A stretch of DNA of 64,000 nucleotides, taken from the sequence record PQ898602.1. One strand, 5' to 3'. The notes beneath the pieces are model-generated. The model searched no databases, had not been told where the DNA came from, and worked only from the letters and a program-made list of their open reading frames with translations. A program made the translations under genes and the position numbers. Within the stretch, counting starts at the first letter, position 1. Each line of letters starts with the position of its first letter. Positions 26,688 through 38,163 of the stretch are shown one piece after another.

Positions 26688-27224
26688 ATGCCTCGTCTAT
26701 CACCTGAAGAAGTATCTAAAGTCCCCTCCGTGGACTTTATGTTCCGTGAAGACGGAGAGTTTGTTGCTCGTTCTACCGAAGAACTTTTTGGTGGTAAACG
26801 TGTAGTTCTCTTCGCACTCCCTGGTGCATTCACTCCTACTTGCAGTGCTTACCAACTCCCTGGTTATGAAGCCTTCTACGATATGTTCCGTGAACAAGGT
26901 ATCGATGAGGTTTTCTGTCTCTCTGTAAACGATGCATTTGTAATGAATGCCTGGGGTAAAGACCAAGGTATCGAAAAAGTCAAACTCATTCCAGATGGTA
27001 ATGGCGAGTTTACTAGTTACATGGGATTACTCGTTAAGAAGTTCAACCTAGGTTTTGCGTCACGTTCTTGGCGTTATGCCATGGTGGTCAATGATATGGT
27101 TATTGAACAAATCTTCGCAGAAGATGGAATCGGTGACAACGTGGATGAAGATCCCTATGAGTGGTCAACTCCAGAAAAACTACTAGAATATGTGAAGGGT
27201 GAAGAACCCGTAATCGCACAATAA
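26688..27224 (+). CDS. peroxiredoxin (Prx5/type II)
   Basis: LPGAFTPTCS peroxidatic Cys, SVNDAFVM.AW, RSWRYAM. Confidence 0.93.
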   Translation: MPRLSPEEVSKVPSVDFMFREDGEFVARSTEELFGGKRVVLFALPGAFTPTCSAYQLPGYEAFYDMFREQGIDEVFCLSVNDAFVMNAWGKDQGIEKVKLIPDGNGEFTSYMGLLVKKFNLGFASRSWRYAMVVNDMVIEQIFAEDGIGDNVDEDPYEWSTPEKLLEYVKGEEPVIAQ

Positions 27225-27255: not shown

Positions 27256-29631
27256 ATGTTAAAAACCAGCATCACGGATAGAGTCGAGAGTCATCTCCTC
27301 TACACATTGGGTAAGAACCCAGATAATGCTACATCACATGACGTATACACTGCTTTGTGTTATGCGGTTCGAGACAGAATGGTTGAAAACCATTTAGTTC
27401 CCAAGTCTCCCCGTAAAGAAGTTGCGTATCTTTCTGCAGAATTTTTGATTGGACCTCAACTGAGTAACAATCTTCTCAACTTAGATATCCGCAAAGATGC
27501 TGAGAGTGCAGTTGGTAAGTTCGGATATGGTCTAGAAGAGATTCTGGATCATTCTGTTGAACCTGGACTTGGTAATGGTGGTCTAGGTAGACTTGCTGCA
27601 TGTTATATGGAATCCATGGCGACTCTGAGAGTTCCTGCCACTGGATATGGTATTAGATATAAGTATGGTATTTTCAAACAAACTATCAAAGATAACCAAC
27701 AGGTAGAGGTTACCGACAACTGGTTGCATGGTGATTGGCCATGGGAACTCTGTTACCCCGATGAGTCGGTAATGGTTGGATTTGGTGGTAAGGTAGAACG
27801 ATATGGTAATAAGGTTCGGTGGGTTCCTGAAAAGAATGTCGTCGCAGTGCCTTATGATGTTCTGCAAGCAGGATACAAGGTAGATAGTTGTGCAAAGATC
27901 CGCCTCTGGAGAGCAGACGCGATTGATGTATTTGACTTCAAAGCATTTAACCAGGGAGACTATCTTGGTTCTGTCGAGAATAGTGTGACCTCAGAGACTA
28001 TCTCTAAAGTTCTTTATCCTAATGATGGTACAGACCAAGGAAAGGAACTTCGACTGAAACAACAATTCTTCTTTGTAAGTGCTTCTCTTCAGGACATGAT
28101 TAGAAGTTTGGAAGAACGCGATCTTCCTGTGGAAGAGTTCTACAAACATTATCAAGTTCAGTTGAATGATACTCACCCATCAGTTGCAGTTGCAGAACTG
28201 ATGAGAATCCTTATGGATGATTATCACTTTGAGTGGGATCTTGCATGGGACATTACTAGTAAGTCTATCGCATATACAAATCACACACTGCTTCCTGAAG
28301 CACTGGAGAAGTGGAGTGTAAGTCTTTTCGAGAAACTTCTACCTAGACATTTGGAGATCATTTATGAAATCAACTCCAGATTCCTCCAGATCGTTAGAAT
28401 GCACTACCCTGGAGACGAGGAAACCCTTCGCAAACTTTCTATCATTGATGAGACGGGTGGTAGATATGTCAGAATGGCCAATCTTGCAACAGTCGGATCT
28501 CACCATATCAATGGTGTTGCGGCACTTCACTCAGATCTGATTACCAAGAACCTGATGCCCGAGTTCTATGATCTCTGGCCTCATAAGTTTACCAACGTGA
28601 CTAATGGTGTAACACCACGTCGTTGGTTGGCAGATTCCAACCCTGCACTTGCAGAAGTTCTTGATGAATATGTTGGTGAGGATTGGGTATCTCACATGGA
28701 TCGTCTTAGTGAATTGGAGAACTATGCAGATGATCCAGTTGTTCTTGAGAAGATCGGTGCAACAAAACTTATTGGAAAACATAAGCTTGCACAATACATA
28801 AAGAAGACACTTGGCATTTCTGTTGATCCGTCAAGTATGTTTGATGTGCAGGTAAAGAGAATTCATGAGTACAAACGACAGCATCTCCTTGCTCTATGGA
28901 TTGTGTCTCGGTATTTGTATATCAAAAATCATAAAGACGATTATGTTGTTCCACGTACAGTAATCTTTGGTGGTAAAGCCGCACCTGGTTACTACATGGC
29001 GAAAGAGATCATTCGTTTCATTTGTAATGTTGCGGAGACTATCAACTCTGACCCAGACATGGATGGGAAGTTACGTGTGGTCTTCCTACCAAACTATAGT
29101 GTGAAGTTGGGTGAGAAAGTTTATCCTGCTGCAGATCTCTCTGAACAGATCTCAACCGCAGGTAAGGAGGCGTCTGGTACTGGTAACATGAAGTTCCAGA
29201 TGAATGGTGCTTTGACTATTGGTACACTCGATGGTGCAAACGTTGAGATCCGTGATCTGGTTGGTGAAGAGAACTTCTTCCTCTTTGGTAAGACTGAAGA
29301 AGAGATTGGTCAACTATGGGCGAATGGATACAAACCTCAGTTCCATATGAGTGCTTCTCTATTTGAAGCAATCGAACTCATCAGATCGGGTCACTTCTCC
29401 AATGGTGATAAAAATGCATTCAATTCCATCATTGATAATTTGATGGAGAGTGATCCATTCTGTGTTTGTGCAGACTTCTCTGACTACTGCCGTGCTCAGA
29501 ACGTTGTGGATAACACATGGGGTAACAGAAAGGAATGGAATCGTAGATCTCTGATGAACATTGCGAGATCTGGATTCTTCTCTTCGGATAGATCTATTCA
29601 AGACTACTGCGATAACATTTGGAAAGTATGA
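27256..29631 (+). CDS. glgP: glycogen/alpha-glucan phosphorylase (GT35)
   Basis: 791 aa; SAEFLIGPQL, GLGNGGLGRLAACY, QLNDTHP, YTNHTLLPEALE, NGVAALHS, VKRIHEYKRQ, GGKAAPGY, EASGTGNMK (PLP lysine). Confidence 0.97.
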   Translation: MLKTSITDRVESHLLYTLGKNPDNATSHDVYTALCYAVRDRMVENHLVPKSPRKEVAYLSAEFLIGPQLSNNLLNLDIRKDAESAVGKFGYGLEEILDHSVEPGLGNGGLGRLAACYMESMATLRVPATGYGIRYKYGIFKQTIKDNQQVEVTDNWLHGDWPWELCYPDESVMVGFGGKVERYGNKVRWVPEKNVVAVPYDVLQAGYKVDSCAKIRLWRADAIDVFDFKAFNQGDYLGSVENSVTSETISKVLYPNDGTDQGKELRLKQQFFFVSASLQDMIRSLEERDLPVEEFYKHYQVQLNDTHPSVAVAELMRILMDDYHFEWDLAWDITSKSIAYTNHTLLPEALEKWSVSLFEKLLPRHLEIIYEINSRFLQIVRMHYPGDEETLRKLSIIDETGGRYVRMANLATVGSHHINGVAALHSDLITKNLMPEFYDLWPHKFTNVTNGVTPRRWLADSNPALAEVLDEYVGEDWVSHMDRLSELENYADDPVVLEKIGATKLIGKHKLAQYIKKTLGISVDPSSMFDVQVKRIHEYKRQHLLALWIVSRYLYIKNHKDDYVVPRTVIFGGKAAPGYYMAKEIIRFICNVAETINSDPDMDGKLRVVFLPNYSVKLGEKVYPAADLSEQISTAGKEASGTGNMKFQMNGALTIGTLDGANVEIRDLVGEENFFLFGKTEEEIGQLWANGYKPQFHMSASLFEAIELIRSGHFSNGDKNAFNSIIDNLMESDPFCVCADFSDYCRAQNVVDNTWGNRKEWNRRSLMNIARSGFFSSDRSIQDYCDNIWKV

Positions 29632-30308
29632 ACGTCTGGGTTGGGTACGATACCCGTGAACATGATGCTTTCGAGGTCTGTAGATATAGTATTCATAAAC
29701 ACAGACCCGAAGTAGAAGTACATGCAATCGAACAAAAAAATATGAGATTACTGGGTCTTTATACTAGACCTGTTGATGATCTTGCTTCGACCGAGTTCTC
29801 TCTGACTCGGTTTCTTACTCCTGCCCTATCAGAATTTAAGGGGTGGTCACTCTATTGTGATTGTGACTTCCTCTTTTTAGATGATATTCAGAAGTTGTTT
29901 GATCTTGCAGATCCTAAGTATGCTGCAATGGTAGTTAAACATGACTATAAACCAAAGGGTCGTTATAAGATGGATGGACGTTTCCAATGGTCATATCCAA
30001 GAAAGAACTGGAGTTCTCTGATTCTATTCAATAACGAACACCCAGCACATCAGTCTCTGGATGTCAACAACATGTCTCCTGTTGAGTTGCATCGATTTAC
30101 TTGGATTGATGATAAAGATCTAGGTGAACTACCTGGATGTTGGAACTGGTTGGTTGGTTATGATGATGATTCATGGCCATATAAAGATCCATCTGCACTT
30201 CATTATACCGACGGCGGTCCATGGTTTGAGGAGACTAAGGATTGCGACTACGCCGATCTATGGAACAATTCTTATGAAGAGTGGAGTAAGACTAAGATTT
30301 CTGGATAA
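29628..30308 (+). CDS. glycosyltransferase (GT8-like phage type)
   Basis: STEFSLTRFL, DCDFLF, YPRKNWSSLILFN, LHYTDGGPWF. Confidence 0.8.
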   Translation: MNVWVGYDTREHDAFEVCRYSIHKHRPEVEVHAIEQKNMRLLGLYTRPVDDLASTEFSLTRFLTPALSEFKGWSLYCDCDFLFLDDIQKLFDLADPKYAAMVVKHDYKPKGRYKMDGRFQWSYPRKNWSSLILFNNEHPAHQSLDVNNMSPVELHRFTWIDDKDLGELPGCWNWLVGYDDDSWPYKDPSALHYTDGGPWFEETKDCDYADLWNNSYEEWSKTKISG

Positions 30309-30984
30309 CTATACCTGTACGGAGATTGCATTTACATCTCCTCCTAGGTTTTGTGATTTTGAATATCAGAAAGATCAATATGTCACTGAGTCTTTTATCC
30401 GTAAAGGTTTGAAAGATTTTTACAAGGATATTCAAGCACTTAAAAAAATTTACGATACTCCTATAGACATATGTGATCCATACTTCCATCACATAGATAA
30501 CTTTCCTTCTAGGTTTACTAAGTTTGCATATCTCCGTAAAGAATTTTCTGAAGGTGTTCCCATGGAACGCCCGATATTTTATGGATCAGATTCTGATTTT
30601 CTTATAGGTTCTGGTAGATGTCTTATCGTTGGAACTTACTTCAAAGATAAGAAGATTGATATGGTAAGAGTCAATGAAAGAAAATTTATTGAGTCAACCA
30701 AAAAAATATATGACTTGATTCATAGTTTAAAGAATGAAAGTGAGGATGTCGTACTTCATGTTGAGAAGTCGGATTTTATAGATGCCTATAAGATAATGGA
30801 TATTACATTTGGAAAGTTGGAAGATTGCATAACTCGTAGTGGTGGTGTTCTTGATTTTTGGCATGAACAACCTGACTTTCAAATATTGAGAAGAAAGGTA
30901 AGGAAAATAATTCAGTCAACTAATATAGATAATATTAACCAATTGTATGATGTTCTAGATGAAATATCATTATTATTATACTAG
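30274..30984 (+). CDS. uncharacterised protein, paralogue family X copy 1 (ParB/Srx-like core)
   Basis: FTKFAYL..RPIFY..LIGSGRCLIVGTYFKDK. Confidence 0.6.
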   Translation: MKSGVRLRFLDNYTCTEIAFTSPPRFCDFEYQKDQYVTESFIRKGLKDFYKDIQALKKIYDTPIDICDPYFHHIDNFPSRFTKFAYLRKEFSEGVPMERPIFYGSDSDFLIGSGRCLIVGTYFKDKKIDMVRVNERKFIESTKKIYDLIHSLKNESEDVVLHVEKSDFIDAYKIMDITFGKLEDCITRSGGVLDFWHEQPDFQILRRKVRKIIQSTNIDNINQLYDVLDEISLLLY

Positions 30985-30985
30985 T

Positions 30986-31735
30986 ATGAAGAGGTGGCTT
31001 CAACACCACGAAGAATTTGAACCTGATAACTTTAGTGTTTCACTTTCTTATTTTGAAAATGTAAATATCCCTCAGAGGTTTTCTCTAGATTATCTTTCTG
31101 ATTTTATCGGGCAGGTTCAAAAGTTTAAGTCACTAAAGAGTTCTAAAGATGTGAAACTATCATATCTTGAAACAAAAGTCAGTATGTTTACTAAGTATCC
31201 ATACTTGTACAACTCTCTTAGAAAACACAACAAGGCTCTGTATCCAGTTGTTGTTAATTATGATCAACATACTTTATCTTCTGGAACTGGTAGACTTCTT
31301 TTAATGACGAAGTATTTTCCAGATATGAAAATAGATCTCGTCTTGAATGACCATAAAAATCCTCAATATAGAAACTATGAAGAGTTTATAGAAGAACGTA
31401 TTTTGCCCAAGTGGGATTTGGATGATACGTATTCATGTTATTCCGATTTCTTTACTGGTGAGGTGGGTGTTCCTCAACGCATGAATACATTATGTGGATT
31501 TGAGTTTGCTAAAGAAGGATATGAAAAGACATGCCCTACTAAAACATCAGCACAGAAGATACCATATGCAAGAGTAATTTCTAGTGATTATGCCATGTGG
31601 GAAAGAGTTCATTCTATACTGATGGAATCTAATCCCATGACACTTGTCCAGTATGATGAGTTGCTAGATAGAATTATATTTGATAATATTGAATATGTTG
31701 ATAGTACACAAGTTGAAGACTTATTAAAGACATGA
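30986..31735 (+). CDS. family X copy 2
   Basis: FTKYPYLY..YPVVV..SSGTGRLLLMTKYFPDM. Confidence 0.6.
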   Translation: MKRWLQHHEEFEPDNFSVSLSYFENVNIPQRFSLDYLSDFIGQVQKFKSLKSSKDVKLSYLETKVSMFTKYPYLYNSLRKHNKALYPVVVNYDQHTLSSGTGRLLLMTKYFPDMKIDLVLNDHKNPQYRNYEEFIEERILPKWDLDDTYSCYSDFFTGEVGVPQRMNTLCGFEFAKEGYEKTCPTKTSAQKIPYARVISSDYAMWERVHSILMESNPMTLVQYDELLDRIIFDNIEYVDSTQVEDLLKT

Positions 31736-32436
31736 CTACTATCGTAATTCCTGCAAGACTTAAGAGTGAAAGACTCAGAGAGAAAGCCATCGAAGACATT
31801 GATGGTCTTACTCTTATACAAAGAGTGGTAAAACAATGTTTAAAAACGCCATTTTCTGTAACTTTGGTAACTGACTCGCTCAAAATAGCAGATTCTATTT
31901 GCCCAAGGAATGTCAATATCCTTTGTTTCGATGAAAATGCATCTTCTGGGACAGAAAGAATTGCAAATGCCATAGAAATGATCCCTGGTGATGATATTAT
32001 TAATGTTCAGGGAGACCAACCATTCATTGATCCTGGTGCCATCATAGAGATGTCCGAGGTGATGGAACAGATGCAAGAGTACCAAGTTGTTACTCCTTAC
32101 AAATACTATGATCGCAGAAGTGATTATGGTGTTAGTGGTAGTAGATCGAAGGTAGTTACTAGTCAGAGTGGCAGAGTCATGTACTTTAGTCGATATCCTC
32201 TGGGAACAGATCGACTCAAGATTCACATGGGGATCTATGGTTATCGTAGAAAGTTCTTGGAGAACTTCCACACATTAAAAACCTCCCGACTAGAAGAAGA
32301 CGAGAGGTTGGAACAGATTAGATTTTTGGATAATGATATTCCAGTCTATGCTTACGAAACTAAGTATGACGTTTTTTCTGTGGATGTGCCAGAAGACCTA
32401 GAACACGCTCGAAAGATAGCTTGGGAATGTGACTAG
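31732..32436 (+). CDS. kdsB: CMP-Kdo synthetase (3-deoxy-manno-octulosonate cytidylyltransferase)
   Basis: IPARLKSERL..K, SGTERI, NVQGDQP, YFSRYP, HMGIYGY, LEQIRFL, SVDVPEDL. Confidence 0.92.
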   Translation: MTTIVIPARLKSERLREKAIEDIDGLTLIQRVVKQCLKTPFSVTLVTDSLKIADSICPRNVNILCFDENASSGTERIANAIEMIPGDDIINVQGDQPFIDPGAIIEMSEVMEQMQEYQVVTPYKYYDRRSDYGVSGSRSKVVTSQSGRVMYFSRYPLGTDRLKIHMGIYGYRRKFLENFHTLKTSRLEEDERLEQIRFLDNDIPVYAYETKYDVFSVDVPEDLEHARKIAWECD

Positions 32437-33132
32437 AGGAATCTGGGAGTGTCGGTCTGAGAGTGCCCTAGAGGGATCTGGATGCACCTCAGCAAAGAAT
32501 GCTTCTGCACCCCAGATCTTTGCACTCTGTGCAAGAGGTTGTGCATACAACCAGTTACCACCAGTTGTGGATTCTCCACCTTCCTGAGTGGAATGAGTTG
32601 AATCAAAACAAACTTTGAATCCAGCACTCTTTAGTTTATGAATGGTTCGGAAGTCAACTACCAGGTTGTCATAACCGAAAGATGTACCACGTTCGCAGAT
32701 GTAAAAGTCTTCGCAACCATATGCTTCCATATTCTCACCCAGGAGAATTGCTTGACGAGGGGACATGAATTGTCCTTTTTTGACATTGACTAATTTACCA
32801 GACTCTGCAACTGCTTGGAGCAAGTCGTTTTGACGACATAAAAATGCAGGGACTTGGTATGCGTCTACATAGTTGGATAGGATCGCAACGTCTTGTGGTT
32901 CATGGACATCAGTGATGACTTTGTAACCTGCATCACGCAGTTTTTCAAAGATCTTGATTGCAAATCTAAGTCCATGTCCACGAAAACTTTTATGACTGGA
33001 TCGGTTTGCCTTATCAAAGGATGCCTTGAAGTAGTAGTCTACACCTTCGGGTAGATTCTCAGTAATAGTTTTCGCTACTAGGAATGCATCTTCTTCAGAT
33101 TCCAGTAGACAGGGACCTGCAAATAATTTCAT
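32398..33132 (-). CDS. kdsA: Kdo-8-phosphate synthase (metal-dependent type)
   Basis: AGPC, FKASFDKANRSS, TDVHE, PAFLCRQ, VKKGQF, CERGTSFGY, FDSTHS, EVHPDP..ALSD. Confidence 0.93.
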   Translation of the reverse strand: MKLFAGPCLLESEEDAFLVAKTITENLPEGVDYYFKASFDKANRSSHKSFRGHGLRFAIKIFEKLRDAGYKVITDVHEPQDVAILSNYVDAYQVPAFLCRQNDLLQAVAESGKLVNVKKGQFMSPRQAILLGENMEAYGCEDFYICERGTSFGYDNLVVDFRTIHKLKSAGFKVCFDSTHSTQEGGESTTGGNWLYAQPLAQSAKIWGAEAFFAEVHPDPSRALSDRHSQIPLVTFPSYLSSVF

Positions 33133-33155
33133 TCTATGATAGAATACTTTCATTA

Positions 33156-33164
33156 ATTATACCA
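33156..33164 (-). promoter_or_regulatory. extended -10 promoter candidate for kdsA
   Basis: TG-G-TATAAT on the minus strand, 24 nt upstream of the ATG at 33132. Confidence 0.45.
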
Positions 33165-34060
33165 TGATGGCATCATATTTTCCAGAGTACAACAGACTAA
33201 GAGAGTGTTGGGTTGGTCGTGCATATGATTCTTCACTCGTAACTGATACATTTGTTAAAGATATCCTTGATGAAACCGAAGAGGATCTGGTAAACTTTAG
33301 TCAAATGTTAAGAGATTTGGAAGTCGAAGTCAAACGACCGACTTACAAGAATCCTGATGTTACTCGGAAACCACAACTTCTACACGCACGGGATCACCTC
33401 CAATATCTTAACGGCAAACTTTATGTCGGTCCAAGGTATGAAGACAATATTGCTGATTGGTTGGAGTTGCTTGATGGTAGAACTCCTTTTGTCACTCTGG
33501 ATAATCTATGTGCGCCTTCTGTAGTTCGTGCCGACAGAGTTTACTTTGATGCGGTATCATGGACACGTAAACGTTTTGAGTATTTTCAACATGGGAATCC
33601 TGATCTGCCTTGTGTTTTTGAACGACTCTCTTCTCGCGATTTTAACATCGAACGTCATACAGATGGTGTATTCTGTGTAGTCAAGGAAGGTGTAATCATC
33701 TCTACTCCACAAGGGCGTAACCTAGAGTATCTATTCCCTGAGTGGGATATCTTATATCTCGACCAGAATACTCAAGATCTCAATGATATGGCGAAGACCA
33801 AAGGTAAGTTTATTTGGTCTCCAGATCAGATCCCTGATGATTACAGGGACTGGGTGGGATATTCACCTGAGACTTTCTTTGATGTCAATGCACTTGCTGT
33901 CGATGAGAAACACTTCATGTGTACTCGATACAATAAACAGGTGTTCGATTTCCTGAAGAAACATAAGGTGGAACCAATTATCGTACCCTTCCGTCATAGA
34001 TACCTATGGGATGGTGGACTCCATTGTATGACTTTCGATTTCATTAGAGATGTTAGTTAA
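33164..34060 (+). CDS. amidinotransferase family protein (copy 1)
   Basis: RLRECWVGR, HARD, RHTDGVF, FDVNAL, GGLHCMT (catalytic His and Cys). Confidence 0.8.
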   Translation: MMASYFPEYNRLRECWVGRAYDSSLVTDTFVKDILDETEEDLVNFSQMLRDLEVEVKRPTYKNPDVTRKPQLLHARDHLQYLNGKLYVGPRYEDNIADWLELLDGRTPFVTLDNLCAPSVVRADRVYFDAVSWTRKRFEYFQHGNPDLPCVFERLSSRDFNIERHTDGVFCVVKEGVIISTPQGRNLEYLFPEWDILYLDQNTQDLNDMAKTKGKFIWSPDQIPDDYRDWVGYSPETFFDVNALAVDEKHFMCTRYNKQVFDFLKKHKVEPIIVPFRHRYLWDGGLHCMTFDFIRDVS

Positions 34061-34745
34061 TAAACAAGGAATAGTCGATGCAGAGTTGCAGACGTTTCCG
34101 TGGGAACATATTTTAGTTGATAATTTTATTGAAGAAAATACCTTCAATGAACTTCTGAAGATTGCAGATCATATTAAAAGTATTGAATCTACCTTCAAAG
34201 AATCTATTCATTATGTACCAGAATATAATGAATGTGTATTTAATTTGAAACACCTCATTCAGATTGGTGTAGATCCAAAGGTTGTTGAACTTTATGCAAA
34301 AGTTCTGGATGATATCAAGGAACTGAAAACTACAATATGGGATAAGTTTTCTGATCATCGGCATTGTGAAGAGGATAGGACTTATTGTAATGGTCATTTA
34401 AACTGGACAGGTTCTGGTGGTTACTATCACATTCATCCAGATTCCCATACTAAAAGTGTAAGTATTATTGTTTACTTTGATCCTGACGAAAATAACACTA
34501 CGACTCTTTGGGGTAAACCTGGAGTCGAATCTACATGTGTTAGACCTGAGTGGAAAAGGAACAGAGCCGTTGTATTCTGCCCTAACAAATCCACTTGGCA
34601 CTCTGTAGATACTACACATAGTAATAGGATGACTCTTGCATGTTTTATTGAGTTTGTTCCTGAAGATAAAAGTTCATACGGAAAGTTCACTGTAGAAAAT
34701 ATCAGATTCAGTAAAGATTACTCAGTAACTCAACTTAGAATCTGA
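34050..34745 (+). CDS. 2OG-Fe(II) oxygenase-like
   Basis: PWEHILVDNF, HIHPD, EWKRNRAVVF..TWHSV..R. Confidence 0.75.
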   Translation: MLVNKQGIVDAELQTFPWEHILVDNFIEENTFNELLKIADHIKSIESTFKESIHYVPEYNECVFNLKHLIQIGVDPKVVELYAKVLDDIKELKTTIWDKFSDHRHCEEDRTYCNGHLNWTGSGGYYHIHPDSHTKSVSIIVYFDPDENNTTTLWGKPGVESTCVRPEWKRNRAVVFCPNKSTWHSVDTTHSNRMTLACFIEFVPEDKSSYGKFTVENIRFSKDYSVTQLRI

Positions 34746-35470
34746 TGAAAGTTCGTTGTATATACGAAGAGAATATAAGAAATAGACTTCCTAATGTATA
34801 CATACCCATTCAGAAGTTCTGTAAGTTTCAATATTTGCGTGATGTAAATCTGAATAGTGCAAAGTATGATCGTATATTTGATCTATCCTTTGATGAGTTC
34901 AAACGTAATGTGAATTTCATTGCACAGAGAAAAGAGAACTGGAATAACTATAGAGTTTCATCAATACTTAAATTACCCATTCTATACAGAGACATGATGA
35001 ACTATGGGAAGTGGAGAGACCCTATCGTCTTCACCCCATATGAACATACTATACCCGATGATGGTTCTGGAAGAACATTGGTAAGTAAGATTTTCTTTCC
35101 AGACATGCCTTATGATCTTTTGTATTATGAAAAGGAACATGATGATCTGAAATCCTTAAAAGAACTGATTAATATCTTTCATGATAATGTTAATCCAGGT
35201 TCCTACAAAGTCATTGATGTTTATTACAAGTTATATGGTGACTTTGCATATAGTAGACAGATTGAGTTTTTGAAAGAAGAGAAAGAAGTAAAAGAATTTT
35301 GTGGTAGTTGGACTTTGGATATTGTTCAGGAGTTGACTTCTACCCTATTCAAAGAAATGATCAGAAAGATTCGTAGTGATCCGCCTCAGACAGATGATGA
35401 TTATATTGAGTTATTAAAAGACCTTGTAAAGATGGATTATAAATTTAATAGTAAGTCTATATCTTATTGA
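34745..35470 (+). CDS. family X copy 3
   Basis: LKLPILY..DPIVF..DDGSGRTLVSKIFFPDM. Confidence 0.6.
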   Translation: MKVRCIYEENIRNRLPNVYIPIQKFCKFQYLRDVNLNSAKYDRIFDLSFDEFKRNVNFIAQRKENWNNYRVSSILKLPILYRDMMNYGKWRDPIVFTPYEHTIPDDGSGRTLVSKIFFPDMPYDLLYYEKEHDDLKSLKELINIFHDNVNPGSYKVIDVYYKLYGDFAYSRQIEFLKEEKEVKEFCGSWTLDIVQELTSTLFKEMIRKIRSDPPQTDDDYIELLKDLVKMDYKFNSKSISY

Positions 35471-36150
35471 AAATGTTCTACAACATTGATAGTATTCTCA
35501 AATCTGAACTTCGTAAGGAACCTTGGGAACATAAAGTTGTTGATAATTCAATCAATCCAGAGGTCTTCAAGACTCTCTCCCTTATTCCTAAGATGATCCT
35601 GAATAAGAATAGGAGAGGGACACCTTTGATGAGTAAGTTCATTCATGAATCCAAGGTGGATTATGAGGGTGCTGTTATGGATCTTGAAGAACTACTTAGA
35701 GTGGGTCTTGCGGAAAATATGGTAGAACTTCTTTATGATTGTGGTAAGTCTTTGTTTGATGCTAAAGATCAGATCTTAGAACAATTCTCTTCTTACCAGA
35801 AGTCTTCTGATGGAGAATATCTTTTTGATGTAAACTTGCAGTTTTTATTCCCAGGAAATGAAGTGAGTTTGCATGATGGTGGGTACAATAGGACTCTTTC
35901 ATGTGTTACTTACCTGAGCCCAGATATACAATCGGGAACACGGCTCGGTGATTCAACAGAAGTTGAATGGAAGAAAAATAGATCAATAATCTTTGCCCCA
36001 CATAAAGGAGTGACTTGGACTTCTTATGAAAATCCCTATGAGATGCAGTCGTTCCGATTTGTCATCAGTACTTTTGTTGAATTTGTAGAATATAAGAATA
36101 TCGAATTTTCTACTGGTAAGAAGTTTAAATTCTTGACTGGTTCCAAATGA
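35467..36150 (+). CDS. degenerate 2OG-Fe(II) oxygenase-like paralogue of 34050
   Basis: PWEHKVVDNS, EWKKNRSIIF; HxD reads HDG and the distal His reads T. Confidence 0.65.
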   Translation: MKMFYNIDSILKSELRKEPWEHKVVDNSINPEVFKTLSLIPKMILNKNRRGTPLMSKFIHESKVDYEGAVMDLEELLRVGLAENMVELLYDCGKSLFDAKDQILEQFSSYQKSSDGEYLFDVNLQFLFPGNEVSLHDGGYNRTLSCVTYLSPDIQSGTRLGDSTEVEWKKNRSIIFAPHKGVTWTSYENPYEMQSFRFVISTFVEFVEYKNIEFSTGKKFKFLTGSK

Positions 36151-36887
36151 ATATTTCTTACTATGGTCACCCTCTGGAGATGTATCCTGGGTGTGTGAAT
36201 AAAGAGACTGAAGAAGATACAAGGGTATGTAAACAATACTACTTTGAAGAAGAACCAAAGATATTGAACTATGAATATCTTTCCGAGACTACTCTGTCAA
36301 AGAAAGATATGACTCATACGATCTCAGTTTTCATGGAGGATGTGAACCATGTGAAGGATGGGAAGTACGATGATCCTGATGATGTTGTGGTGAATACGCC
36401 TACACACTTCACCAAACTTCCAACTCTTTACAGACAACTAAAAGAGGATCCATGCCTTCACTATCCAATATGGTATTACCCTAATGGGAACATGTTCAGT
36501 GGTTTGGGTAGAACTCTGATCATCACTAGGTATTTCAGAGAGATGACTTTGGATAAAGTCGTTTGCAATACTCAAGATGGTGGTTCAGTGCAGGACTTGA
36601 TTGATCGTATTAGTCGGAGTCGATACTGGAAAAACAAGTCCTTGACAGGGATGAATGCAGTTGTTATGATTGCGAACGTCGAAGCGCCACCGCATCAACT
36701 CTTTGTCCGTCAGTTGGAGTTTTCGGATAAGACATCCGACCAATTCCTTTCTGGACCTTGGGTGGAGTCATACCTCCATATGGATGACCTTTGGAGAGAG
36801 ATGAAGAAACTCATTATCTCTTTCAATACGTCAGAACCAAGAGACTACTTGCGGCTTCTAGATAAATTGATTCGGATTGACGCTTGA
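36147..36887 (+). CDS. family X copy 4
   Basis: FTKLPTLY..YPIWY..FSGLGRTLIITRYFREM. Confidence 0.6.
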   Translation: MNISYYGHPLEMYPGCVNKETEEDTRVCKQYYFEEEPKILNYEYLSETTLSKKDMTHTISVFMEDVNHVKDGKYDDPDDVVVNTPTHFTKLPTLYRQLKEDPCLHYPIWYYPNGNMFSGLGRTLIITRYFREMTLDKVVCNTQDGGSVQDLIDRISRSRYWKNKSLTGMNAVVMIANVEAPPHQLFVRQLEFSDKTSDQFLSGPWVESYLHMDDLWREMKKLIISFNTSEPRDYLRLLDKLIRIDA

Positions 36888-36917
36888 CATTATACGGAAA
36901 TCCGTATATTATAAATA
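36884..36917 (+). promoter_or_regulatory. overlapping early and late promoters of psbA
   Basis: TTGACA-N17-TATTAT with TATAAATA at 36910-36917. Confidence 0.7.
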
Positions 36918-36959
36918 AATCAACGGATTAAGAAACGTAACGTTTTCTAATCTATTGTA

Positions 36960-37075
36960 AACTCTCCGTAAACCGAGACCTCTAGGGAGTATAAATCACG
37001 TCTCTAATACCCGAGCCGGAGGGTGGCACGGGAATACTTATAACTGGTTCGTCCCCCGAACTTTTACTTAACCCT
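36960..37075 (+). ncRNA. psbA 5' leader RNA, probably PhotoRC-II motif
   Basis: GAGAC...GTCTC and CCCG..CGGG pairings in the psbA 5' UTR; family assignment from recall and position. Confidence 0.55.
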
Positions 37076-37086
37076 TTTTCAAAACA

Positions 37087-38163
37087 ATGGCTACAACTCT
37101 TTCAAGACAACAAACATCTACCTGGGAAGACTTTTGTTCCTGGGTGACCAGCACCAATAATCGTCTGTATGTCGGTTGGTTCGGAGTCCTCATGATTCCT
37201 ACCCTTCTTGCCGCAACAGTCTGCTTCATCACTGCTTTCATCGCTGCCCCACCAGTTGACATCGATGGAATCCGCGAACCAGTTGCTGGTTCTCTAATGT
37301 ATGGTAATAATATCATCTCTGGTGCCGTCGTACCATCGTCTAACGCAATCGGTCTTCACTTCTATCCCATCTGGGAAGCCGCCTCTCTCGATGAGTGGCT
37401 CTACAATGGTGGTCCTTTCCAACTTGTAGTATTCCACTTCCTGATCGGCATCTATGCCTACATGGGTCGTGAGTGGGAACTCTCTTATCGTCTGGGTATG
37501 CGCCCTTGGATCTGTGTTGCATACTCCGCACCTGTTGCTGCTGCTTCTGCAGTCTTCCTCGTCTATCCTTTCGGTCAAGGTAGTTTCTCCGATGCTATGC
37601 CTCTTGGTATCTCTGGTACTTTTAACTATATGCTTGTATTCCAAGCAGAACACAATATCCTTATGCATCCGTTCCACATGCTCGGTGTTGCTGGGGTATT
37701 CGGTGGATCTCTGTTCTCTGCTATGCACGGAAGTCTGGTTACTTCTTCTCTCGTCCGTGAGACGACTGAAACTGAGTCCCAGAACTATGGTTACAAGTTC
37801 GGTCAAGAAGAAGAGACCTACAACATCGTCGCCGCTCATGGTTACTTCGGTCGTTTGATCTTCCAATATGCATCCTTTAACAACTCACGTTCTCTGCACT
37901 TCTTCCTCGCTGCGTGGCCTGTTATCGGCATCTGGTTCACTGCTCTTGGTGTTAGCACCATGGCATTCAACCTTAACGGATTCAACTTCAACCAGTCTAT
38001 CCAAGACAACCAAGGACACGTCCTTAACACTTGGGCAGACGTTCTGAACCGCGCTGGTCTCGGTATGGAAGTCATGCACGAGCGTAATGCTCACAACTTC
38101 CCTCTGGACCTTGCTGCTGCTGAGTCCACTCCTGTTGCGCTTTCCGCACCTTCTATCGGTTGA
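37087..38163 (+). CDS. psbA: photosystem II D1 protein (intron-free)
   Basis: [14 protein letters not shown]...[13 protein letters not shown]. Confidence 0.99.

Follow-up and report, generated by a model that had tools for sequence, protein, structure and literature searches.

Introduction

The ParB/sulfiredoxin (Srx) fold is shared by the ParB/SopB/KorB CTPases and by sulfiredoxin, SerK and SbnI, small soluble proteins which carry out nucleotide-dependent chemistry rather than DNA segregation. The SbnI gene sits within a biosynthetic gene cluster. A PF02195-seeded survey (PMC12704722), from which the Box I and Box II motif definitions used here are taken, describes single-domain or short orphan ParB/Srx proteins of phages, in which Box III is often missing. 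According to the same survey, ParB-fold fusions to methyltransferases and acetyltransferases bind ATP or GTP, while 17 of the 28 purified recognised ParB-fold proteins bound no NTP in vitro.

Here we compare these systems with a locus in the 64,000-nt window of record PQ898602.1, the whole stretch of DNA analysed, which comes from the marine cyanophage Synechococcus phage S-SCSM2R.

Results

A rare family in four copies

The window encodes four related proteins, A to D:

30274..30984, plus strand: paralogue A, 236 aa, SSCSM2R_262, 'hypothetical protein' in GenBank, intact ORF
30959..31735, plus strand: paralogue B, 258 aa (249 aa if the start is 30986), SSCSM2R_263
34745..35470, plus strand: paralogue C, 241 aa, SSCSM2R_268
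36147..36887, plus strand: paralogue D, 246 aa, SSCSM2R_270, the protein chosen for modelling

A, B, C and D are true paralogues. All four ORFs are intact and begin with ATG, and the family proposed in the earlier note is thus borne out, with lengths of 236, 249, 241 and 246 aa as given there. The motif order it described is present in the four-way alignment with one exception: the first position of the first motif, claimed to be F or L, is so in A, B and D but is I in C. The start of B also needs correction. It is most likely 30959, as in GenBank, rather than 30986, because the orthologues retain nine additional N-terminal residues, which correspond in the alignment to the first strand of A, C and D. 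Purifying selection acts on all four genes, with dN/dS values between 0.06 and 0.20 (A and C, 0.16-0.20; B, 0.20; D, 0.06).

The family has no match in Pfam, PHROG, NCBIfam, PADLOC or PDB sequences. Its own HMM recognises paralogue A at 159 bits. None of 57 members matched PF02195 (ParB), searches of these members revealed neither an HTH nor any other DNA-binding domain, and a PDB profile search with the family found nothing. Among 1.8 billion proteins the family amounts to 62 clusters at 50% identity, all from marine phage-like contigs, and among 50,697 deposited phage records S-SCSM2R alone carries it. Hence, A-D belong to a rare, unnamed protein family restricted to marine phages, whose members are soluble proteins of ~240 aa and mildly acidic (median pI 5.7; 72% below pI 7).

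Gene neighbourhood and mosaicism

The paralogues lie among the following genes, which overlap or abut from a phosphorylase gene through D:

26688..27224, plus strand: peroxiredoxin gene, conserved anchor on the left of the slot occupied by the cassette
29619..30308, plus strand: GT8-like glycosyltransferase-like gene (GenBank start 29628, annotated 'GT family 24')
31732..32436, plus strand: kdsB, CMP-Kdo synthetase (PF02348, E 9e-34), part of an inserted Kdo module
32398..33153, minus strand: kdsA, Kdo-8-phosphate synthase (PF00793, E 7e-45), the block's only minus-strand gene
33164..34060, plus strand: amidinotransferase-like gene, ORF266, 298 aa, weak match to solved amidinotransferases
34050..34745, plus strand: ox1, 2OG-Fe(II) oxygenase (prolyl-hydroxylase-like PF13640, E 1.5e-6)
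35467..36150, plus strand: ox2, 2OG oxygenase-like, ORF269
36949-37045, plus strand: PhotoRC-II RNA (Rfam RF01717, 71 bits), right anchor together with psbA
37087-38163, plus strand: psbA, conserved right anchor of the slot

The neighbours named earlier are of unequal standing. While kdsA and kdsB are solid, the GT8-like gene matches PF01501 at E ~1e-3, below the Pfam cut-off, in 4/4 orthologues, among which its D-x-D is invariant. The amidinotransferase-like protein resembles solved amidinotransferases in their C-terminal third only (E 2e-3), and ox2, which has no Pfam hit, is assigned by its 29% identity to ox1. The published virion proteome includes the amidinotransferase-like protein and ox2, as well as one protein of unknown function without identification; the text of that paper mentions none of A-D (PMC12801897).

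In four phage lineages, the interval from the peroxiredoxin gene to psbA contains the GT8-like gene together with 3-5 family copies. The GT8-like gene stands directly before the main tandem run in the window and in the related phages L002, L003, L007/8/20/21 and L009; L007/8/20/21 have one further family copy upstream on the other strand, and one contig carries five copies in tandem. L007 has five family copies but a single transferase, so the copies and the enzymes are not paired one to one. GT8-like homologues are also present in other phages without the family. Of the neighbours noticed earlier, the constant partner of the main array is the GT8-like gene. The Kdo/amidinotransferase/oxygenase genes constitute a mobile module of their own, which in related phages is located elsewhere or is absent nearby.

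A distant subfamily, which occurs without any GT, always directly follows a radical-SAM/SPASM gene and has an AsnB-like gene in its vicinity; in L014 the radical-SAM gene has a relative of ox1/ox2 just upstream. In another lineage the family adjoins a methyltransferase and a GNAT, a pairing reminiscent of the methyltransferase and acetyltransferase fusions described for the ParB fold. Neither a ParA partner nor a DNA-modification gene was found as a constant neighbour of the family.

The slot contains different, unrelated genes in different cyanophages, and within the cassette divergence is uneven. Compared with L003, dS is 1.5-2.7 for A, C, ox1 and ox2 and 0.18-0.43 for flanking genes. Paralogue C shares only 39% identity with its L003 counterpart, with dS saturated, whereas kdsA and kdsB are 97-99% identical between phages. 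GC is 0.32-0.35 in A (0.318), B, C and ox1, against 0.40 for the window. Individual family copies and the neighbouring oxygenases are thus exchanged between phage lineages as divergent alleles.

A conserved core resembling the ParB/Srx fold

A K, a P, a G-x-G-R and a D are common to A-D at fixed positions, within these cores:

30508..30732, plus strand: A core, mapped from the alignment; K83, P100, G112-x-G114-R115, D129
31181..31402, plus strand: B core; K70, P87, G100-x-G102-R103, D117 (numbering from 30986)
34958..35182, plus strand: C core; K76, P93, G107-x-G109-R110, D124
36402..36614, plus strand: D core, residues 86-156, from model secondary structure, column conservation, hhalign register and Foldseek hits

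Among the 57 members, in D numbering, these columns are conserved as K90 53/57, P107 56/57, G119 53/57, G121 51/57, R122 53/57 (with K in the other 4) and D136 46/57. AlphaFold2 modelled D with pLDDT 88.2 and pTM 0.86 (all five models, pLDDT 87-88). In the model, helix 91-100 is followed by a loop ending at P107 and by strands 108-110 and 116-118; G119-x-G121-R122 caps helix 120-129, and D136 opens strand 135-146, after which comes helix 148-156. Model and column conservation together place the G-x-G-R at a strand-to-helix junction, after a helix, a loop and an invariant Pro. To this core the model adds a sheet at the N-terminus, a beta-hairpin and, at the C-terminus, a helical bundle.

The best Foldseek match in the PDB was the pNOB8 ParB-N domain (5k5d_B, E 0.03, probability 0.44). 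ParB 6sdk was also matched, and sulfiredoxin 6ky4 was recovered with both independently built models over 71 columns (target-normalised TM 0.41-0.45). In the viral library BFVD, 20 of the top 50 hits had informative names, and 17 of these were ParB/Srx proteins; a putative modification methylase was among the best hits. Every hit had E of at least 0.03, none reaching E 1e-3, and whole-chain TM was ~0.2. SerK, a suggested comparison, was absent from the best 50 fold hits, as was SbnI. An hhalign comparison with a real ParB profile (20 SopB-type ParBs) was not significant (P 0.08, probability <1%); in its sole alignment, ParB Box I, the loop Pro and GxRR are matched in register by residues 92-127 of the family. 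As the Pro-to-GxxR hairpin in this alignment is 6 residues shorter than in the compared ParBs, the spacing, which had been claimed to be that of the ParB/Srx fold, is not simply that of ParB. No equivalent of Box III was identified in the family.

Because no single structural hit is significant and the hhalign P is 0.08, a very divergent ParB/Srx (ParB-CTPase) nucleotide-binding fold is a probable, not a proven, assignment for the core; the top PDB hit, the BFVD hits and the motif register favour it. Alternatively, the likeness could be superficial, a common helix-hairpin-helix with a glycine-rich turn within a new alpha/beta fold, and the proteins could have structural, host-interaction or anti-defence roles and merely share a variable island with sugar genes. 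The lack of any passing statistical test (Foldseek, hhalign and zero HMM hits) would agree with this, as would the variable slot and the size of the core, ~70 of ~240 residues, flanked by a sheet and helices that ParB lacks. Nevertheless, the dominance of ParB/Srx among the named BFVD hits is not easily due to chance, two independent models return the same families, the near-invariant residues are those which define Box I and Box II, and transferase, oxygenase or radical-SAM company is found in two independent genomic settings. We thus regard a chance resemblance as unlikely.

Discussion

We tentatively favour a ParB/Srx-fold family which acts in a nucleotide-dependent manner beside group-transfer and oxidative enzymes, a reading that as a whole falls somewhat short of an even chance. 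The core would consist of a Box I-like helix with a loop ending in the invariant Pro, and a Box II-like G-x-G-R with the Arg capping the next helix. In each copy this Arg may bind a nucleoside triphosphate or a nucleotide-linked donor, with the near-invariant Lys and the Asp as candidate partners. The nucleotide could then be used to phosphorylate or activate an acceptor, as in the ParB-fold enzymes SerK, SbnI and sulfiredoxin; a kinase or activator role in glycan or DNA-base tailoring, as proposed earlier, would be of this kind, and the gene context fits tailoring chemistry. Or the copies could be nucleotide-gated partners of the adjacent enzymes (GT8-like, 2OG oxygenases, methyltransferase, GNAT, radical SAM). 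Differences in specificity among the copies would reside in the variable N-terminal sheet and the 140-200 region, and replacement of one copy by another would then alter the product, most likely a glycan.

The same fold might instead serve a non-enzymatic function, as a nucleotide-gated switch or regulator of the DndB or EdeB type, or as an NTPase working with a DNA-modifying enzyme; phage DNA or host-takeover targets, not a glycan, would then be the substrates of the GT8-like protein and the oxygenases. Characterised ParB-fold proteins are mostly DNA-associated switches and in phages most of them are fusions with DNA methyltransferases (PMC12704722), the modification methylase among the BFVD hits points the same way, and multi-copy recombining accessory genes are typical of phage-host conflict loci. 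Such a role is nonetheless doubtful for acidic proteins without a DNA-binding domain, which have no constant ParA or DNA-modification neighbour and whose neighbouring oxygenases match a prolyl-hydroxylase-like family rather than one of nucleic-acid oxygenases.

Proteins are often the substrates of GT8/GT24-type and P4H-type enzymes. That the paralogues are themselves such substrates, hydroxylated and glycosylated by the neighbouring oxygenases and GT8-like glycosyltransferase so as to diversify a surface or virion-associated product, would suit the Pro and Tyr positions that are near-invariant or highly conserved in them, the several copies per enzyme in L007 and the two cassette proteins in the virion, but is very improbable, as the virion proteins named are enzyme-like and include no paralogue (PMC12801897), the G-x-G-R/Lys/Asp pattern typifies ligand pockets, not acceptor loops, and the distant subfamily lacks any GT.

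With the nucleotide-dependent reading in mind, the family can be compared with known systems. The orphan phage ParB/Srx proteins are its best Foldseek matches; like it, they are phage-encoded, come without ParA and HTH, and have the same helix-loop-Pro, hairpin and GxxR capping helix. The family differs in that its core is embedded in 240 aa with extra elements and in that PF02195 is blind to it, and therefore the PF02195-seeded survey could not find it. Arrays of 3-5 paralogues beside a GT8-like gene, such as the family forms, are unreported for ParB-fold proteins in that survey (PMC12704722). Sulfiredoxin is a recurrent structural hit, but the family has no sequence match to sulfiredoxin, SerK or SbnI in the PDB, and where sulfiredoxin has its catalytic Cys in the P-motif, A-D carry L, S, T or S, then G. 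The ParB/SopB/KorB CTPases provide the top PDB hit and the Box I and Box II register. In contrast to them, the family is acidic, has a shorter hairpin and lacks an HTH, a dimerisation domain, a ParA neighbour and a parS context, and the statistical support for the likeness is insignificant. Finally, the locus resembles mosaic O-antigen/capsule loci and the variable regions of T4-like cyanophages, where conserved sugar-nucleotide genes likewise stand beside divergent tailoring alleles; here, however, the variable genes are not recognisable glycosyltransferases, flippases or polymerases but one uncharacterised family together with 2OG oxygenases.

Four intact paralogues of a rare marine-phage family

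Synechococcus phage S-SCSM2R (PQ898602.1, 244 kb) is a T4-like cyanomyovirus whose isolation host is WH7803, and window positions 30274-36887 match it with 100% identity. In GenBank, the paralogous genes A, B, C and D are labelled SSCSM2R_262, 263, 268 and 270 respectively, each as a "hypothetical protein", and none of them is mentioned in the text of the paper describing this phage (PMC12801897). The cassette in which they lie is as follows.

27256-29631, plus strand: full-length carbohydrate (glycogen-type) phosphorylase gene, 791 aa (PF00343, 1033 bits), directly 5' of the GT8-like gene
29619-30308, plus strand: GT8-like gene
30274-30984, plus strand: gene A
30959 or 30986-31735, plus strand: gene B
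31732-32436, plus strand: kdsB
32398-33153, minus strand: kdsA
33164-34060, plus strand: amidinotransferase-like gene
34050-34745, plus strand: ox1, a 2OG oxygenase gene
34745-35470, plus strand: gene C
35467-36150, plus strand: ox2, an oxygenase gene
36147-36887, plus strand: gene D
36949-37045: PhotoRC-II RNA (71 bits)
37046-37062: terminator-like hairpin, just 5' of psbA

All four ORFs possess an ATG start and an intact reading frame, with the lengths that the earlier note had assigned to them. On sequence grounds, gene B probably starts at 30959, because the nine additional residues are retained in its orthologues and line up with the first strand in the other paralogues; the four proteins span 236-258 aa. 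A 4-way alignment showed the shared motifs in the order proposed earlier, except that the first motif of gene C begins with Ile. Membership of one paralogue family was confirmed as well, as A-D scored 159-222 bits against an HMM of 57 members (A-D included), and the same HMM found no further family ORF in the 64 kb window. When compared with orthologues on two metagenomic contigs, A-D gave dN/dS values of 0.06-0.20 and are therefore all constrained protein-coding genes. Proteins of the family are soluble, lack a transmembrane segment and have a median pI of 5.7, which is mildly acidic.

None of A-D had a match in Pfam or PHROGs, and no family of Pfam, NCBIfam or PADLOC was matched by two or more of the 57 members. 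A word-indexed search found 13 relatives among 5.8 billion proteins. Among 1.84 billion representatives clustered at 50% identity, an exhaustive HMM search detected 62 relatives at E <= 1e-3, of which 32 reached E <= 1e-10. Named cluster members were all "hypothetical protein" or a bare metagenome gene label, and the contigs with family members bear cyanophage or other marine-phage genes. When 50,697 phage records were searched by tblastn, with D, B, P0075 (a relative) and P0123 (a distant relative) as queries, S-SCSM2R was the sole match. Scanning of IMG/VR gave no confirmed locus with the alignment A2, and with P0075 only two loci, both from a lineage already included here.

In this tblastn search P0123 matched gene D at E 1e-4, and a distant subfamily was therefore confirmed from the reverse direction. 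Its members (219-290 aa) always lie directly after a radical-SAM/SPASM gene, the end of which they overlap, with an AsnB-like amidotransferase gene nearby. The loci of this conserved trio were found on three marine phage-like contigs.

L011: 2246-3798
L014: 9096-10660
L015: 9091-10873

The radical-SAM gene of L014 is immediately preceded by a relative of ox1/ox2, and a related ORF occurs on L011.

Gene cassette and its constant GT8-like partner

The run of plus-strand genes that begins with the phosphorylase gene and ends with D is tightly packed, with gaps of -39 to +10 nt, and kdsA alone is encoded on the opposite strand. A terminator-like hairpin is located 3' of the peroxiredoxin gene, and the PhotoRC-II RNA, preceded by a strong promoter-like site, lies 3' of D and 5' of psbA. 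This promoter-like site is sigma-70-like and near-consensus (11/12 matches), and it overlaps the stop codon of D; the site, the RNA and the terminator-like hairpin 5' of psbA fall within window 36884-37062.

The order of this slot is common to four phage lineages: petF, peroxiredoxin, an optional phosphorylase gene, the GT8-like gene, several family copies and psbA. The copy number is four in the window and in L002, five in L003, five, including one on the opposite strand, in L007/L008/L020/L021, and three in L009, and the contig L013 consists of five tandem family copies and nothing else. L002 and L003, contigs of the S-SCSM2R lineage, carry the phosphorylase gene, which is missing from the slot in L007 and L009. 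The fifth paralogue of L003 (4140-4919, 259 aa) is nearest to D (29% identity) and is inserted between the GT8-like gene and A. Longer members of 348 and 354 aa with an extra N-terminal segment occur at L009 3744-4790 and L013 3135-4199, respectively. In the L009 protein this segment matches the C-terminal helix region of the family, and its sequence suggests a partial internal duplication.

The GT8-like gene is the constant partner of the array, with 49-94% identity between lineages. It may belong to GT8, as assigned earlier. Its DxD motif, D81-x-D83, is invariant among the orthologues, and its Pfam match stays under the curated cut-off: PF01501 was found in 4/4 orthologues at E about 1e-3, and the window's own protein scored 17.9 bits against a cut-off of 24.3 bits. 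No match of this protein to PDB sequences was obtained. Homologues of the gene occur in the Pelagibacter phage Mosig, Caulobacter jumbo phages and the Stenotrophomonas phage DLP_6, and tblastn from family members gave no match in these phages. The Mosig homologue is the nearest from an isolated phage (41% identity) and is situated amid two methyltransferases, a sulfotransferase and three hypotheticals of 239-276 aa, in the region L019 6946-11903. These hypotheticals, in the sole such neighbourhood scanned, did not match the family HMM; the gene group may be a cassette analogous to that of S-SCSM2R.

The family had also been described as sitting among kdsB, kdsA, an amidinotransferase and oxygenases. 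The neighbourhood survey showed that this is true in the S-SCSM2R lineage, but that these genes are not a constant partner. Instead, kdsB, kdsA, the amidinotransferase-like gene and one 2OG oxygenase form a separate, mobile-like module (window 31732-34745). This Kdo module lies within the array in the S-SCSM2R lineage and about 5 kb beyond psbA/psbD in L008/L020 (16064-19100, 61-76% identity). It was not seen near the array in L007 or L009, and the L009 array holds a methyltransferase and a GNAT in its place.

Replacement of alleles within the cassette

Between the window and the closely related contig L003, amino-acid identity is 92-97% for kdsB, the GT8-like gene and the amidinotransferase-like gene, while D shares 89%, B 75%, A 60%, ox1 56%, ox2 47% and C 39%. 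The dS values were 1.5-2.7 (saturated) for the divergent genes versus 0.18-0.43 for the flanking genes, with dN/dS of 0.16-0.29. The divergent genes have thus been swapped for old, divergent alleles rather than evolved fast in place. Gene order differs as well, reading C, ox1, ox2, D in L003 (8682-10867) and ox1, C, ox2, D in the window. A, B, C and ox1 are AT-rich (GC 0.32-0.35), compared with 0.41 for D and 0.40 for the window, and GC troughs of 0.345 were located at 30001-32000 (A and B) and 34001-36000 (ox1, C and ox2) in surroundings of 0.40-0.45. The genes in these troughs are the most divergent set between the related phages.

Predicted structure and the ParB/Srx fold

The AlphaFold2 model of protein D built from 16 sequences was mediocre (pLDDT 72.7), while that from 57 sequences was confident (pLDDT 88.2, pTM 0.86), with all five models at 87-88. 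The latter has the following parts.

N-terminal part: three-stranded sheet 2-48, then a long helix 52-70
Core, first half: helix 91-100, loop 101-107 ending in P107, strands 108-110 and 116-118
Core, second half: G119-x-G121-R122 capping helix 120-129; strand 135-146 opened by D136; helix 148-156
C-terminal part: beta-hairpin 170-193 and three helices 204-241

All conserved columns fall within the core of D: K90 (53/57), P107 (56/57), G119 (53/57), G121 (51/57), R122 (53/57, plus 4 K) and D136 (46/57).

The ParB-CTPase fold is defined by three boxes (PMC12704722). Box I, the C-motif, contacts the base and comprises a helix of ~12 residues and a loop of ~6 residues ahead of the first core strand; Box II, the P-motif, is a GxxR with a conserved Arg at a strand-to-helix junction and contacts phosphate; and Box III, a second phosphate/Mg motif, is frequently missing from orphan members (PMC12704722). 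In the model of D, a Box I is present in topology and register (helix 91-100, loop 101-107 with P107, strand 108-110). The GxGR motif, previously proposed to be of the ParB/Srx kind, does resemble Box II, as G119-x-G121-R122 follows strand 116-118 and opens helix 120-129. No equivalent of Box III was found in the family, D136 being the sole conserved acidic residue downstream.

The best PDB match of D in Foldseek was 5k5d_B, the N-domain of pNOB8 ParB (E 0.03, probability 0.44). Arabidopsis sulfiredoxin 6ky4 was matched by both D models with TM values of 0.41 and 0.45 (target-normalised, 71 columns), and a CDP-bound ParB by the first model only. Nothing was found with the D models at E <= 1e-3. 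Among the top 50 matches in the viral structure library BFVD, 20 were informatively named and 17 of these were ParB/Sulfiredoxin, ParB or ParB-like. One of the three others was a modification methylase, which is a common fusion partner of the ParB fold (PMC12704722). Foldseek matches to pyruvate kinase and F1-gamma were set aside at probability <= 0.08.

Profile comparisons were made with two sphingomonad plasmid SopB-type ParBs, found via their ParA neighbour, and 18 relatives, all with PF02195; the diversity of this profile is low (Neff 2.9). The single hhalign alignment between the family and these 20 ParBs had a probability of 0.7% and P 0.084, which is not significant. Its register places family residues 92-127 onto the Box I helix, the loop Pro and the GxRR of ParB, with GxGR on GxRR and a family hairpin shorter by 6 residues. 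PF02195 was found in 0/57 members at E <= 1, and PDB searches with the 4-sequence and 57-sequence profiles gave noise only. A match to Rab6 (E 0.03) with the 4-sequence profile was gone with the 57-sequence profile and was therefore treated as noise. P1 ParB (accession from PMC5241659) gave no hhalign match to the family, and was dropped as a comparator because Pfam finds no PF02195 in it.

Box I/II topology, register and the ParB/Srx Foldseek matches are consistent with the ParB/Srx-like core proposed earlier, but sequence and profile similarity does not support it, and no match was significant. That the family core adopts the ParB/Srx fold is probable but unproven. The same insignificant scores would suit a look-alike fold with an unrelated role; beside the concordant boxes and the ParB-dominated BFVD names, we regard this explanation as unlikely.

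Proposed role and alternatives

The conserved Lys, the Gly-rich turn, whose Arg sits where a helix begins, and the downstream Asp would make up a typical phosphate-binding constellation, possibly the counterpart of the NTP site in ParB-fold proteins. Sulfiredoxin, SerK and SbnI are non-DNA members which employ the fold for phosphotransfer. All three are placed in the ParB-fold tree (PMC12704722). Known fusions, which bind either ATP or GTP, join the fold to methyltransferases and acetyltransferases (PMC12704722). Hence A-D may be tailoring enzymes that depend on a nucleotide, or else nucleotide-gated proteins that act together with the neighbouring transferases and oxygenases; their variable parts would presumably set the specificity. 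We tend to favour this reading because of the residue constellation, the known phosphotransfer members and the enzyme fusions.

A non-catalytic switch, regulator or DNA-modification partner would agree with the modification methylase among the BFVD matches. The mildly acidic, soluble proteins without an HTH argue against a classical DNA-binding ParB role, not decisively, and such a function for A-D appears doubtful. The adjoining genes might also suggest that A-D are protein substrates of the GT and hydroxylases, which we consider highly improbable for proteins with so conserved a putative phosphate site.

In its full form, the tailoring-enzyme reading is offered tentatively. Marine phages might have recruited the ParB-CTPase fold as an expanding paralogue array of nucleotide-dependent tailoring enzymes or specificity subunits, possibly dependent on cytidine nucleotides or CMP-sugars. 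These would partner GT8-like, 2OG oxygenase and radical-SAM enzymes, and be exchanged like serotype determinants so that a glycan of Kdo type, or some other secondary product, is varied on the virion or the infected cell. If true, this would be the first viral ParB-fold family of glycan or small-molecule enzymes.

The proteome of CsCl-purified S-SCSM2R virions contains the amidinotransferase-like protein (ORF266) and ox2 (ORF269), together with one protein of unknown function (PMC12801897). This suggests that cassette products are packaged or very highly expressed, and a cassette product could act on the host surface or on phage recognition. The cassette next to psbA in ocean cyanophages is compact and recombining, composed of the GT8-like gene, the array of paralogues and, optionally, a module of Kdo, amidinotransferase and oxygenase genes. 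As S-SCSM2R is a cultured phage bearing it, a descriptive study of structure, expression and composition is feasible.

Comparison with known systems

The ParB-CTPase fold serves as a DNA-segregation switch and also in a few phosphotransferases. A recent survey regards it as a versatile nucleotide-binding module; since that survey was seeded from PF02195, the present family is out of its reach (PMC12704722). If the fold holds, the family is a new clade without a sequence-level link to known members, occurring in 3-5 copies per genome and linked not to DNA but to the chemistry of sugars, oxidation and radical-SAM enzymes.

Compared with canonical ParABS ParBs, in which both domains are seen, no HTH_ParB or SopB_HTH match was found in any of the 57 members, and no family cassette contains a ParA-like gene. 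Sulfiredoxin has a size of about 90-140 aa and a catalytic Cys within the P-motif, whereas A-D are larger (236-258 aa) and their P-motifs (G-L-G-R, G-S-G-R, G-T-G-R and G-S-G-R, respectively) are without Cys. The free-serine kinases SerK and SbnI were absent from the PDB sequence matches and the top 50 Foldseek PDB matches, and their likeness to the family is at the general fold level only. Fusions of the ParB fold to methyltransferases and acetyltransferases, on the other hand, mirror the gene neighbourhoods of the family. The family would be a sequence-orphan variant of a known fold class, unusual in that its several copies recombine and that its context is not one of DNA. The pattern of alleles recalls that of serotype-type glycan loci, in which conserved sugar-nucleotide genes are combined with exchanged tailoring genes.
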